The position numbers and the translations under genes are program-made. Positions 26,005 to 31,387 of a stretch of 64,000 nt of DNA are shown piece after piece; positions within the stretch are counted from its first letter, which is position 1, and every line of letters starts with the position of its first letter. Location of the stretch: assembly GCA_009103225.1 (NCBI GenBank), contig RHPI01001037.1, positions 1,340,916 to 1,404,915 on the forward strand, in the 5' to 3' direction. Origin of the DNA: Chlorokybus atmophyticus (taxonomy: Eukaryota; Plantae; Mesostigma and Chlorokybus algae). The notes below the pieces were generated by a model. The model was not told where the DNA came from, searched no databases, and saw only the letters and a list, made by a program, of their open reading frames with translations.

Positions 26005-26940
26005 TCACCTCGGCAAGGTGGCATACTGTACATCGTCGTCAGTAGTCCATGCAAGTAGCATATTCAAATACAAGAGCTTGTTGAGTTGTCCTGGCGTCAT
26101 TTCTGTCACGCCTCGATCATTCTCCACGGACTCTTGAACATGAAATGACACCACATAATAGTTCATTCTGTTCAGTAACTGGTCTTCCTCATCCAAGGTC
26201 AGACAGAAATTTTCTTCCATGAATGCGACACCATCGTCCACAGGCACGACAGGTCCTTTGACAATCACCTCATGTTCATAGTCTGTGGATCTGTCATCGT
26301 CCCATTCACACGTGTGGCCGCCGTCGCGCACAATAGTGTTTAACAAGCACGCCATCTTGCCATCGCTCTTGCGCACAACTTGCACAATCATATCGACGCA
26401 TTTCTCAAAATTGCTCGGATGCACCTCTACCGCGAACTCTTTCAAATTGTCGCCAAGTACAAGCAACTGCACAACACCAGTTGCATCAACACTCTGCAGT
26501 CACACGCGACAACGCTACCAGCATGACACACGACATGCATGTCTTCATCGTACCTGCTGAGCAATGCTGGAGTGTACAACTTTATCATCCTTGTAGATGT
26601 GAAGCATGAACAAAAAATGCTGTTAGTTGTGCTGGGTTTAACAGGGCAATGCACGGCAATGCTGTTCACTCAGTACCAGCTGCTGCAGAAGAATGCTATG
26701 ACAAGTCAGTGCACACCAGTCGCACACCATTCCCTTCATGCAATGCGGCATAGAATGAATGACAGTCTACACATATTGTAGGAGCGCACAGTAGGTCCAT
26801 CATGACCCCAACCGACTTGATCTGCATAATTGCTTTGCTTCAACAAGATGCCAACTCGAGCAAATTATGCACAAGACTGCTTGAAGGACACAACATGCCC
26901 AAGGCATACACTCGTCTCTGCCTCCTGCCTTGAGTGCCAT
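26005..26940 (-). pseudogene. Decayed F-box-like gene immediately downstream of MINPP1; intact 155-codon last exon
   Basis: ATG at 26940. The frame reads MALKAGGRDEYALGMLCPSSSLVHNLLELASC*SKAIMQIKSV (F-box-like pattern, internal stops). A frameshift then gives HFLFMLHIYKDDKVVHSSIAQQ, spliced GT-AG to the open exon LLVLGDNLKEF...YATLPR*. Confidence 0.4.
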
Positions 26941-26943
26941 CAA

Positions 26944-29734
26944 TCAGGCAACGGACTCAGTGACAATTGCTTGGCTTGTGGTTGCCGGCATCGCGCAAAG
27001 CGTGTCAAAGTCCTGGTTCATATATGGTGCAGCGATCTCATCCTGTAGATGAAGCTGATATGAGATTCAACCATGACAGCACAACGAAAGCGACAATAAG
27101 TGACCACAGTGAATGTCTTACCAGGAAGAACTGAAGATCACAATCTGGGCCTCCACATGCCTGCGACACGTTGATGAATGCTTGTCAATGCAAGCATCCT
27201 CAACGCAGCAATGCGTAAGCGGTAACAATGATATATTGCTGCACGACTGCCAAGCATTACCGGAATCTCCACAGGTTGCTCATTGTGGAATGCTCGCAGT
27301 ATAAACCGCGCTTCTGAGCCATCCTCTGCAGCACAGCGGTACAGCACCAGCGCAACATTGCCAGCAAAGGGCGATACCAAAGCTCCACGAAACTTGCGCT
27401 GTGCTATAGCTGCCTGCCCTTCAGGTGACAGCACGTCCGGCATGTCTCGAAGAGCCTCTGTAGAGTCGGTATGAACGCGAATGATGAAGATGTTACACAG
27501 CCCAATCCCATGCGTGACGAGAACTACGTTGAAGTAGTAGTAAGCACTTACTGAAACACATTTGCTCTGGGCTGCAGCTGCAGTGATCCTTGCAGTCGGC
27601 GTGTACAACATGGCAGGGACAGTCGTGAGGTGCATCGCTACCATACACGTTGTGTTCGGGGTCTTCACGGAACAGCCCAAGGGCACAGGTCAAGGGCAGG
27701 AGCACCTCTGCATGTGCAATCTGCAACACGAAGTTGATTAGGCCATCAAAAGTGTTAAACACACAGAAGTCATCATGGCGGATATGCAGTCTATATAAAA
27801 CCTGTATCCGAGCACGCTCCACACCAGGCAGTGCTTCGGTAGTTCGGGCATGAGCCATGGCTGCAACCTGTGCTGCTGTGGCTAAATCATCCACAAGGAG
27901 AGCTGCCATCTGTACCAACATTGTCCTCAGACAAATCAGAACAGAAACGTCTGCATACAGTCATTAACTATGCACCTTACCTGATAGTTCAACGGGGTGC
28001 CATAAGCTTTGAGCCGGTACGTCTCGACGTCGTCTTGAAACTCCAAAGCCAAAATCTCTTCTTTTGTAAAGAGACCGCACGCCCTGTCCGTGACATCTTG
28101 CAGAGCTGCCTCAGTCTTACAGAGCATCCACAAAGCATCAACATTGTCGGGCTTCAACTGCAGATCATATCTGGCGGCCAAGCGGTCTCCCACCGCTGCC
28201 AGCACACGTTGCCTTGCGGGTTTCAACTGTGAGGTGACCTTTTCCTTGACTGCTTGATAAGCAGGGCAGTTTTTATGAAACCGTAGACGCCGATCCACGT
28301 TCTTGGACTCTGATGAAACAGCAAACGCGCGATGTCTGCCTGGCCCTAAAGTCCCTTGACCTTCATATAAACCTAACCCAAAAGCTGTGGCACTCGCCGA
28401 TGCCCTTGACACCTACACACAGATGCACGCACACGCACATACAACCACACGCTTATTAACTGTTGCAATGTGTATGCCCCAGGCTAGCAGCATCATCACT
28501 GACTGTAACAGCACAAGTTAAGCAGTAAGCCAAGCAAACAGGTGTTACAAACCTGTGATGCACGAAGCATATGTGTGAGCGGATTGTACGCGATCTTCAG
28601 CAGCTGCGGGTACCGTTCACGCCAGCGGAAACCTATGTCGTGCATCTCCTCCTCCCCATGCTGGTGCAGCTGGCCAGCGAGCCATGTCACATTCTCCCAT
28701 GGTGAGTGCCATTCCTTCAACCACTCCGGGAATTTCGAGCTCACGCTGTCGAGTCCTTGTGTTTGCGCTTGCAACTCCTTGGCAAGCACTTGGATAGCCC
28801 GAAGCTTCTTCAGTGTGGGATACCTTGTGCCATGCCTTGCAACCTGTACGAACGCGCAGGTGGATGCAGACTGAAACCGGAGTATGAAGAGCAGCAACCC
28901 AAGCGATAACACAACGGCCCTCGCATGACCACACTCGCTGCACTTGATGCCTGTGTGCGTGCGTGTGTGCCTGTATGTAATACTACCCACTGCCAGTGAT
29001 GTCATACACGCTCATGCAACCATGTACAAACAGGATGCAAGCACACGCACTTGCCATACCAGGTTTATGTGAACAGGGGAACACGTTGCTGGTACAGGTG
29101 GTAATGCTGTTTTGTTCTGTGCTGCGACTGCTGCGGAATACCTGCACCAGACATGCACCACAATCTCTCAATCACGCACGCACAAGGGCACATCGCACTA
29201 CAGACTCTCCAAAATAAACAACATGCTCTTCTTAAACTGGTCGTGCACTTCAGATCTGTGGTTGCATGCAGTGTGGACGCACCAGCCCCTTCCAGCACAC
29301 GCACCGTGTGAATGTTGAGCAGTGCTGTCGGACATCAGAAGTGTCCGTCTCATCAAGAAGCGCACGCTTGCTCACGAGACCGCCATAAAAGCCCAAGCAC
29401 AATCCCGCAATCGCTATCGCTATTGCTCCAGCGATAGCCAAGCCAGACGAGCTGACAGCGCTGGACTTGCCGGCATTGCTATGCTTGCCATCACCAACCT
29501 AAAAAGTGTGAGGTGCACGACAATGACCTCCAACTAAAAATCAAGCGCATGTTGGGAAGTGACCTCAAAGTGATATCCCATGCATAATGTGAAGCACATT
29601 AATGCTGCTGAAGCATGGCCACACGTGGATGTGAACATGAGTACAACAATAAACTCTAGTCAATACTGCTGGTCAAGTCAGCTTGACCCGCAGTACTCAC
29701 TCACCACATCTGATTGTTTTGCTGCTCCTGACAT
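26944..29734 (-). CDS. MINPP1: Multiple inositol polyphosphate phosphatase 1-like histidine acid phosphatase with N-terminal signal/anchor; first exon 29734-29705, second starts at 29498, last 27042-26944
   Basis: Catalytic RHGTRYP; SRASASATAFGLGL; RLRFHKNC; LCKTEAAL; IAHAEVLLPLTCALGLF; SPFAGNVALVLYRC; hydrophobic AIAGAIAIAIAGLCLGFYGGLV. The exon at 29498 has an in-frame stop upstream and no in-frame ATG, so it needs the 10-codon exon MSGAAKQSDV. Confidence 0.9.
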
Positions 29735-29736
29735 TG

Positions 29737-30386
29737 CTACGCGCCCTGCTGGTGGCTGCCAACCACATGGAAAGCGTCAAAGTGTGGCTGTCGCAGTTGC
29801 TCCAGCTGCTTGTAGCCCCGCCGCAAAAGGTACTCAATGTACAGATAGTCCTTGCGATCAACCTGCAAGCAGCAATCGGGTCTCTAGACAGCTGTGCGCA
29901 TGCGGCGGGCTGCTGGAATGAACACGCAATGCACAGCAGCACAGCACCAGAGCACACGCATGCTGCCTTAAACTAAAATGAAGTTGAATTGACAGTGCCT
30001 GCATATGCGCTTGGTGAAGCTGACAGCATGTGCCAAGCGTATGGGTAAGAGACTCGCGCATGTTCACAGCCAACCCTCAAACTGTGAAATCTTCCAGTGT
30101 TGCGAGCGCGCAGCTGTAGAATGCGACCTCACTAACATGCTGTTCATCCCACAGCGAGGAGTCTCCAATACATTGGCTGTGTGTTTAATCAGCACTCGAG
30201 CAGCAAAGCTGTTGAACAAAGCAGCAATCACACAGCCACCTTGGCGTGGAGGTGGAACTGCTGGCGTGCGAACCCTTCAACTTGCGTGCGGACGGCGGGT
30301 TCCTTTTCCCTGGCTGCTCGAATGACGTTGCGGTAGAGGGTCAGCACCTGACTCTGCAGGCCGGACAGCCTTCTCTTCGCGCCCAT
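29737..30386 (-). CDS. SDHAF1: LYR-motif succinate dehydrogenase assembly factor 1; exons 30386-30240 and 29862-29737
   Basis: MGAKRRLSGLQSQVLTLYRNVIRAAREK...FHLHAK|VDRKDYLYIEYLLRRGYKQLEQL, matching the SDHAF1 pattern LSGLQ.QVL.LYR...R...IE.LLRRG..QL. Confidence 0.9.
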
Positions 30387-31387
30387 GCGACGGCCATGCG
30401 ACGGAGCACAACTGAAATGGTGACTGCGAGAACTGACGGAGTCCACACCCTACTCTCTGTACTGCGCTACCGCTTGCTCTCTCCCCTCCCGTAAAACAAT
30501 AAGCACGCCCTGGAAGCTGCCGAGCACACTGCCGTCACCGCCGCCACCGCCGCTGTGCAACTGCAGCTGCGCCACTACGATCGCGCCGCTGAATCTCAAG
30601 CTTACGTGTGCCTTGCCAGTGTACTTTGCCACGGATGCAGTTTAGCCGATACCTAAGGTGTCTTTAACACTCAGGGTGTCTTAAACACAATCCAGCAGTG
30701 CTCAATACCAGACTTGTATTTCGCATAAACAACATAGCCTACACTGTATAGGCTTACTGGTATCTGTAGCCCAGATGCAAAAGTATGATGATACACACAT
30801 GCAGTACATTGCTGACATGTACATCCTAAAGCAATACATGTGTATGAACATGTGTTGCATATGTGGACTTAAACGTAAACATTGCTCATAATAACGCTTA
30901 TAGTAACTTACGATCCTTGTTAATTTTAGCAAATAAAAAAACAGTCAATTCACAATCATCACGATCAGAAGCAACAATCGACAAAACCTACGTTGCAATT
31001 GTATAACACACAACAGTTTGATTCGATTACATAATAAATAGGATGACATTCAACTCAAAATTAACTTAGGTGCTGAAATTGTACGCAGGTAGCGCATATC
31101 ATGCGCTATGCGTTTCAAACAGGCGCACGGTGCGTAGAAACTTGACGAGTTTGTAAAAATCGTGTAGTCATAAAAACTTTAAAGCATTGCTCATCAAATA
31201 ATATACTTCGCCAATAATTATTTGAATAAGGCCTTAAACTGCATACACTTGCCATTTCAAACCTCAAACTCACGCATGTGTGTCAATAGATAGCTGCACA
31301 TTTGCTTTTAAGCTCAATTATTAAATACAATGCAACAGCAACAACTTGACCTGAAGACGATAATAATGATGCATCACTCTCATCCAT

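Follow-up and report, generated by a model that had tools for sequence, protein, structure and literature searches.

Two overlapping matters are considered here: the structure of a locus in the streptophyte alga Chlorokybus atmophyticus, and the way in which its two reading frames may be expressed. The locus lies in a stretch of 64,000 nucleotides (nt) of contig RHPI01001037.1 (assembly GCA_009103225.1, positions 1,340,916 to 1,404,915), referred to below as the window, and all of its features are on the minus strand. The upstream open reading frame (ORF1; 90 codons, 273 nt, one phase-0 intron) encodes a predicted protein of the LYR-motif family. The downstream frame (ORF2), walked by coordinates through the RNA-supported exons, comprises 546 codons, ends with TGA at 26946-26944, and encodes a predicted histidine phosphatase of the MINPP1 type. 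The TAG stop codon of ORF1 (29739-29737) is followed by the dinucleotide CA (29736-29735) and then by the ATG of ORF2 at 29734, in a different frame, so that the end of one gene and the beginning of the other occupy a single internal exon (the shared exon).

The initial annotation of this region, made from the sequence alone, had described the same layout: a frame called SDHAF1 ending at 29737, an ATG two nucleotides further on in the same exon, a first ORF2 exon of ten codons spliced in phase to an exon beginning at 29498 that has no ATG in its frame, and a spacer which leaves no room for a separate promoter or terminator. Direct reading of the sequence confirmed these points, and the splice was found as a contig joint (29705|29498). 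The annotation had also remarked that such a locus would be of particular note in a streptophyte alga, and C. atmophyticus is an early-diverging member of that group. After 29734, ORF2 has no further in-frame ATG until 28645, which already lies beyond the catalytic RHG motif; position 29734 is therefore the only start that would give an active, anchored enzyme, i.e. one with both the N-terminal anchor and the RHG motif.

The structure of the transcript was examined in contigs assembled from sequencing runs designated X1, X2 and X3, whose library types are unrecorded and for which the label RNA is a guess. Eleven intervals are missing from the contigs, each of them bounded by GT..AG on the minus strand, which indicates that the contigs come from spliced RNA. 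Run X1 (a multi-species study from 2013) provided a single contig of 2636 nt, which extends from 30534 to 26285 without a mismatch to the window and spans LYR exon 1, the shared exon and every phosphatase exon. It crosses eleven GT..AG introns, and its length is exactly that of the 12-exon model built from the joints. Run X2 (an independent study from 2021) contributed a contig of 482 nt that holds both joints around the shared exon; this material is approximately 1% diverged from the window and so represents another strain or a cryptic species. The joints 30240|29862 and 29705|29498 were consequently seen in contigs of two studies, with exact GT..AG placement, and the first of them, that of the LYR intron, is also contained in a contig of X3. 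The three X2 contigs are of similar depth, with 280 across the LYR portion of the transcript and 266 and 347 across its phosphatase portions.

None of the runs had contig depth in bins lying wholly inside intron 1 (30003-30163) or intron 2 (29520-29680). A different first exon of ORF2, which would have contradicted the initial annotation, was absent from the run contigs; those of two studies contain the exon that had been proposed, and neither of the introns flanking it has contig depth. At the level of assembled contigs, these data show that both frames are co-transcribed, and they establish how the exons are arranged and that both ORFs are intact. The earlier proposal that one mRNA serves both proteins is thus upheld by assembled RNA from two studies as far as co-transcription is concerned, and is in that sense partly supported. 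Comparison of the window with X2 and X3 revealed three synonymous and no non-synonymous differences in ORF1, and five and two, respectively, in ORF2 (some X2 differences near the ends of aligned pieces, including two in the shared exon, are unlisted by position); these small counts are consistent with purifying selection on both frames.

Table 1. Features of the LYR-phosphatase locus and of the frame downstream of it (positions in the window).
Feature	Position	Strand	Remarks
5' untranslated region (UTR), as far as the RNA contig reaches	30387-30534	-	148 nt; X1 piece 30238-30534, zero mismatches
11-nt tandem duplication, CCGTCGCATGG twice	30383-30404	-	exact copies; read from the sequence
Upstream ORF (uORF), 18 codons, out of frame	30341-30397	-	C at -3, G at +4; TGA 30343-30341; overlaps the LYR start
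ORF1 exon 1, coding	30240-30386	-	49 codons, ATG 30386; LYR tripeptide at residues 17-19
Intron 1	29863-30239	-	377 nt, GT..AG, phase 0; joint in X1, X2 and X3 contigs
Shared exon, 158 nt	29705-29862	-	end of ORF1, 2-nt spacer and first 10 codons of ORF2; spliced on both sides in X1 and X2
ORF1 exon 2, coding	29737-29862	-	41 codons and TAG
Sole other ATG within ORF1	29766-29768	-	out of frame, T at -3, T at +4; 23-codon ORF ending past the splice
ORF2 start, first 10 codons	29705-29734	-	ATG 29734-29732, G at -3; donor GTGAGT follows
Intron 2	29499-29704	-	206 nt, GTGAGT..TTTTAG, phase 0; zero RNA contig depth inside
Exon 3	29305-29498	-	hydrophobic signal anchor, then conserved DVRQH..T.TRY block; no in-frame ATG
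Later ORF2 exons, first four	29141-29060, 28843-28553 (RHGTRYP), 28412-27981, 27909-27802	-	contig joints, ORF walk
Later ORF2 exons, last four	27720-27552 (HAE), 27457-27261, 27160-27122, 27042-26944 (TGA)	-	contig joints, ORF walk
Third ORF	26005-26607	-	ATG 26607; GT..AG intron 26553-26467 according to the X1 contig; genome frame open to 26005, about 170 codons

The assignment of ORF1 to the LYR-motif family is supported by several lines of evidence. Exon 1 alone matched the Pfam family Complex1_LYR (PF05347) over profile positions 2-37 of 59 (E 3.3e-5), with a score of 24.2 bits that falls just below the cut-off of 24.8 bits. The ten best Atlas clusters were all LYR, every one scoring below 0.9. 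Moreover, exon 1 is strongly basic (10 K+R versus 3 D+E), and carries the LYR tripeptide at residues 17-19. The product would presumably be an assembly factor of the mitochondrial matrix.

The more specific name, SDHAF1, is another matter. Exon 2 reads ..IEYLLRRGYKQLEQL.., and its block IEYLLRRGYKQL resembles the arginine-rich, SDHB-binding C-terminal motif of SDHAF1, a tentative likeness confirmed by no tool in queries made with single exons. The subfamily label derives from this likeness, whereas the tools back the LYR family (PF05347 and the Atlas clusters), and it is in this broader form that the initial call can be retained. Word-index protein searches gave zero candidates both for exon 1 (72-residue window ORF, region 21-69) and for exon 2 (48-residue open frame, region 8-48), blanks that mean little given the short queries and the narrow length window. 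PDB sequence searches with each LYR exon separately returned nothing, and an Atlas search with exon 2 gave no usable match.

For ORF2, the initial identification as MINPP1 proved sound. The protein matched Pfam His_Phos_2 (PF00328) with 123.7 bits (E 1.5e-35), and its best matches, with E values from 1e-103 to 1e-84, are proteins of land plants that bear the name "multiple inositol polyphosphate phosphatase 1"; the plant MINPP1 relatives are 36-39% identical over approximately 90% of the length. Further relatives were found in Mesotaenium and Psilotum and among unnamed transcript-derived proteins, and the best matches with solved structures were fungal phytases and a MINPP. The motif RHGTRYP begins at residue 105, and HAE lies at residue 382; in the alignment of seven sequences, neither RHGTRxPT nor HAE varies. 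In MINPPs, an HAE proton-donor tripeptide stands in place of the HD of other histidine acid phosphatases.

Like plant and animal MINPP1, the ORF2 protein combines the RHGxRxP and HAE motifs with an N-terminal hydrophobic targeting segment (core at residues ~29-47, mean Kyte-Doolittle value 2.31). In its relatives, a short N-terminal hydrophobic signal, followed by the block DVRxHLSTxTRY, aligns with the anchor encoded by exon 3, which supports a start of ORF2 upstream of that exon. Unlike these enzymes, however, it has a tail of 28 residues before the hydrophobic segment, which would thus act as a signal anchor and not as a short signal peptide. A second difference concerns the C-terminus: five of the six aligned relatives end with AEL, SEL, VEL or DDL, whereas ORF2 ends with ESVA, and no KDEL-like retention signal was present in ORF2 in the alignment with these six sequences. 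The sequence thus supports a His_Phos_2 enzyme of the MINPP1 type with an N-terminal signal anchor, presumably located in the endoplasmic reticulum or the secretory pathway.

The existing public gene model of the locus is a chimera that fuses both ORFs. An exhaustive profile search with phosphatase exon 6 retrieved a 100%-identical EukProt protein of 669 residues, EP00898_Chlorokybus_atmophyticus_P003882 (jgi Chlat1 4495 Chrsp29S04429). Its residues 1-49 correspond to LYR exon 1 and its residues 134-669 to residues 11-546 of the RNA-supported phosphatase. The intervening part (residues ~50-134) comes from two places: the interval 29912-29706, and a mini-exon at 29608-29561 which falls within the true intron 2. 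For the first of these, the model takes an acceptor that lies 50 nt into the true intron 1, and the shared exon is consequently translated in a wrong frame. Run contigs had no depth at the extra pieces of the model, i.e. 29863-29912 and the mini-exon (bin 29520-29680). Evidently, the annotation pipeline forced one ORF through a bicistronic transcript. When a separate phosphatase of 546 residues was sought among the proteins called from Chlorokybus RNA contigs, only the chimeric model was retrieved. The model thus conceals a putative assembly factor of the respiratory chain, and the N-terminus that it assigns to the phosphatase is false.

In the 148-nt 5' UTR and ORF1 together there are three ATGs upstream of 29734, namely 30397, 30386 (the start of ORF1) and 29768. 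The initial annotation was correct in noting C at -3 of the LYR start, G at -3 of the ORF2 start and a single further ATG (29768) inside ORF1, and these contexts (judged from the base at -3) fit the leaky scanning that it had cited from chlorophytes; what it overlooked was the ATG at 30397, which opens an overlapping uORF. This ATG results from an 11-nt duplication, which sets it out of frame 11 nt ahead of the LYR start and in an identical context. The X2 contig stops at ~30365, short of the duplication (30383-30404). The uORF ends 45 nt past the start of ORF1 and ~230 nt before that of ORF2. The observed/expected ratio of AUGs, based on base composition, is 0.49 in the 5' UTR and 0.31 in ORF1, compared with 1.54 in ORF2 and 1.71 in the tail, and three or fewer ATGs occur in only 2.4% of the 423-nt tiles of the window.

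Many of these features are familiar from chlorophytes, in which bicistronic loci are characterized by a short ORF1 with a weak start context, few AUGs before ORF2 and short spacers (PMC11892635). Our locus resembles them in its short ORF1 (273 nt, compared with a median of ~290 nt in Auxenochlorella), long ORF2, very short spacer, weak ORF1 context and functionally unrelated products, as well as in the presence of a LYR protein, a class over-represented among them, and in having been mis-modelled, as annotators tend to do with such loci. The AUGs before its ORF2 are also few, though no fewer than dinucleotide shuffles of the stretch give. It differs in its streptophyte host, in the spacer of only 2 nt, in the internal exon shared by the two ORFs and in the uORF that overlaps the start of ORF1. 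Moreover, the chlorophyte bicistrons have been tested for the mechanism of translation, whereas the present locus is known from sequence and RNA contigs.

LYR proteins recur in such arrangements. Gallaher et al. (2021) found the LYR motif to be common among polycistronically expressed proteins, with SDHAF3 placed behind TOM22 and four further LYR subfamilies represented (PMC7896298); the TOM22(TOM9)-SDHAF3 bicistron occurs in Chlamydomonas, Chromochloris and Auxenochlorella (PMC7896298; PMC11892635). In the tables of Duenas et al. (2025), COA4 of Auxenochlorella precedes a LYR protein that carries a complex II assembly Gene Ontology term, while in Chlamydomonas it is LYRM9 that precedes a triose-phosphate-translocator-like gene; spacers there go down to 5-10 nt (PMC11892635). 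In each of these cases, as in ours, a small mitochondrial assembly factor of the LYR family shares its mRNA with another gene. The LYR frame is ORF2 in TOM22-SDHAF3 and COA4-LYR, but ORF1 in LYRM9-translocator and in Chlorokybus. Both the partner and the LYR subfamily differ between our locus and the published pairs, and the likeness noted here is one of family and layout.

In the parts of the published bicistron tables that were searched as text, neither a histidine phosphatase nor an inositol enzyme was matched as a partner (PMC11892635), and a text search of the literature turned up no publication about bicistronic nuclear transcripts of streptophyte algae. The land-plant pair CDC26-TTM3, cited in PMC11892635, is comparable: here too, a single nuclear transcript of a streptophyte is translated into the product of a small upstream ORF and, from further downstream, an enzyme of the phosphatase type; its gene families are unrelated to LYR and MINPP1, however, and its pairing is deeply conserved. 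As regards synteny, which the initial annotation had put forward as a check, the transcript contigs of the five nearest phosphatase relatives for which DNA was available have 5' UTRs of 86-167 nt without an upstream LYR-like frame. These relatives appear to be monocistronic as far as the contigs reach, and the pairing of a LYR protein with the phosphatase therefore looks lineage-specific.

Taken as a whole, the locus probably produces a bicistronic nuclear mRNA in which ORF2 is reached by leaky scanning, the route we consider most likely because the locus fits the chlorophyte bicistron pattern. A number of points nevertheless weigh against this interpretation. Dinucleotide-preserving shuffles of the same 60%-GC stretch contain an average of 2.7 ATGs, compared with the three observed (synonymous-codon permutation of ORF1 gives 0.74, compared with one observed), and the scarcity of AUGs may thus be no more than the local composition gives, so that it does not count as independent evidence of selection against AUG. 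The AUG of the uORF (30397) competes with the start of ORF1 and complicates a purely leaky-scanning scheme. Furthermore, ten exon junctions lie downstream of the ORF1 stop at 29737 (to 27043), and a stop codon so placed normally invites nonsense-mediated decay, a pathway that bicistronic mRNAs with an intron-rich ORF2 would have to escape. Finally, assembled contigs cannot demonstrate a cap site or transcription start site (TSS), a poly(A) site or single molecules. The X1 contig extends 336 nt beyond the phosphatase stop into a third ORF, from which it is clear that contig continuity by itself can bridge adjacent genes, and in X3 the sole contig over the LYR joint (56 nt, 29835-30267) has a k-mer depth of 94, compared with ~5 for two exon-6 contigs (28113-28414), a contrast which may be an assembly artefact or a hint of a LYR-only isoform in the sample.

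The last two observations are also what would be expected if short-read assembly had merged two overlapping transcription units, i.e. a LYR-only mRNA ending in or after intron 2, or a phosphatase-only mRNA whose TSS lies within intron 1 or within the shared exon, since a contig across two genes does not prove a single transcript. We judge this improbable. The linkage between the LYR and phosphatase frames is much stronger than that with the third ORF, because the stop and the start lie 2 nt apart in one internal exon that is spliced on both sides within the same contigs, in two studies; in addition, neither intron is covered by contigs, the X2 depths are even over both parts, and a phosphatase-only TSS would have to fall in the part of the shared exon, 128 nt long, that precedes the ATG. 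There is also only a slight chance that the mRNA is functionally monocistronic, its LYR frame being a long regulatory uORF or a decaying remnant which throttles the phosphatase and yields no functional LYR protein. The sub-threshold Pfam score of exon 1, the blank word and PDB searches with either exon, and the upstream out-of-frame AUG, which lowers LYR translation, would all suit such a frame, but its LYR tripeptide and basic composition are intact, phase-0 splicing continues the Pfam domain begun in exon 1, and all three of the strain differences in ORF1 are synonymous. The public genome model contains no separate copy of the LYR gene at the locus, and LYR proteins are typical true members of algal bicistrons (PMC7896298).

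A different route to both proteins from one mRNA would be termination at the ORF1 stop followed by reinitiation at UAG-CA-AUG, to which we assign a low probability as the main source of ORF2 protein. With only 2 nt between stop and start, a post-termination 40S subunit would be ideally placed to find the AUG, yet the efficiency of reinitiation drops with the length of the ORF just translated, and 90 codons is long; nor did direct reading of the 60 nt that lead up to the ORF1 stop reveal a UGGGA-type motif complementary to 18S. When the context of ORF1 is altered in chlorophytes, the output of ORF2 shifts in the opposite direction, a result that favours leaky scanning above reinitiation, although the two mechanisms are not mutually exclusive (PMC11892635). 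As for a single fusion protein, its one point of support is the JGI/EukProt model, which joins LYR exon 1 to the phosphatase. This is hardly credible, as the bridging pieces lack contig depth and the RNA contigs use other splice sites. The true frames of ORF1 and ORF2 differ, so that stop-codon readthrough cannot fuse them either, and a fusion or readthrough protein was accordingly rejected.

For the preferred interpretation, a bicistronic mRNA with leaky scanning, the following scheme can be proposed. A single promoter upstream of ~30534 would generate a pre-mRNA spliced at ten or more GT..AG introns, and the mature mRNA would carry both the LYR ORF1 (a candidate SDHAF1-like factor) and the MINPP1-type ORF2. 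Scanning 40S subunits would encounter the weak-context AUGs at 30397, 30386 and 29768, and a fraction of them would leak through to the AUG at 29734, which has a better context. Ribosomes translating the 18-codon uORF would bypass the start of ORF1 and might reinitiate ~230 nt further on, at ORF2; the favourable geometry of the uORF, together with the 2-nt spacing between stop and start, could add a component of reinitiation that would perhaps assist the translation of ORF2. In such a scheme, the strength of the two duplicated upstream AUGs would set the ratio of both proteins.

The third ORF, located downstream of the phosphatase gene, could be assigned to no Pfam family, and PDB yielded nothing meaningful for it. 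Its ATG at 26607 is separated from the phosphatase stop by ten other ATGs, which places it out of the reach of scanning and means that it must have its own transcript; the entry of the X1 contig into this frame reflects either overlapping transcripts or read-through. In X2, a contig reaches only to 26781, which may be close to the true 3' end. The chlorophyte poly(A) signal TGTAA was of no help here, since its 129 occurrences are about as many as expected (132).

To conclude, we regard the locus as a further RNA-supported case of the layout, known in green algae, in which one mRNA carries two proteins. It is of interest for its lineage, the extreme spacing of its frames, their shared exon, the duplicated pair of AUGs and the correction that it brings to a public gene model. 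The 2-nt spacer and the natural 11-nt duplication, with its two competing AUGs, make it a compact natural test case for leaky scanning versus reinitiation. A more far-reaching view, which we offer tentatively and consider rather doubtful at present, is that the mRNA is obligately bicistronic in this alga, whose lineage was among the first to diverge within the streptophytes, that polycistronic nuclear expression led by LYR genes is older than the split between chlorophytes and streptophytes, and that a recently duplicated pair of weak AUGs sets the output ratio of the assembly factor and the phosphatase through uORF bypass combined with leaky scanning.

The locus extends a recurring theme, that of LYR assembly factors sharing their mRNAs with other genes. 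Chlorophyte bicistrons have been documented and mechanistically tested, and in streptophytes the well-known example is CDC26-TTM3. If verified, the LYR-phosphatase bicistron of Chlorokybus would be a further indication of a wide occurrence of this layout at the base of the plant lineage.

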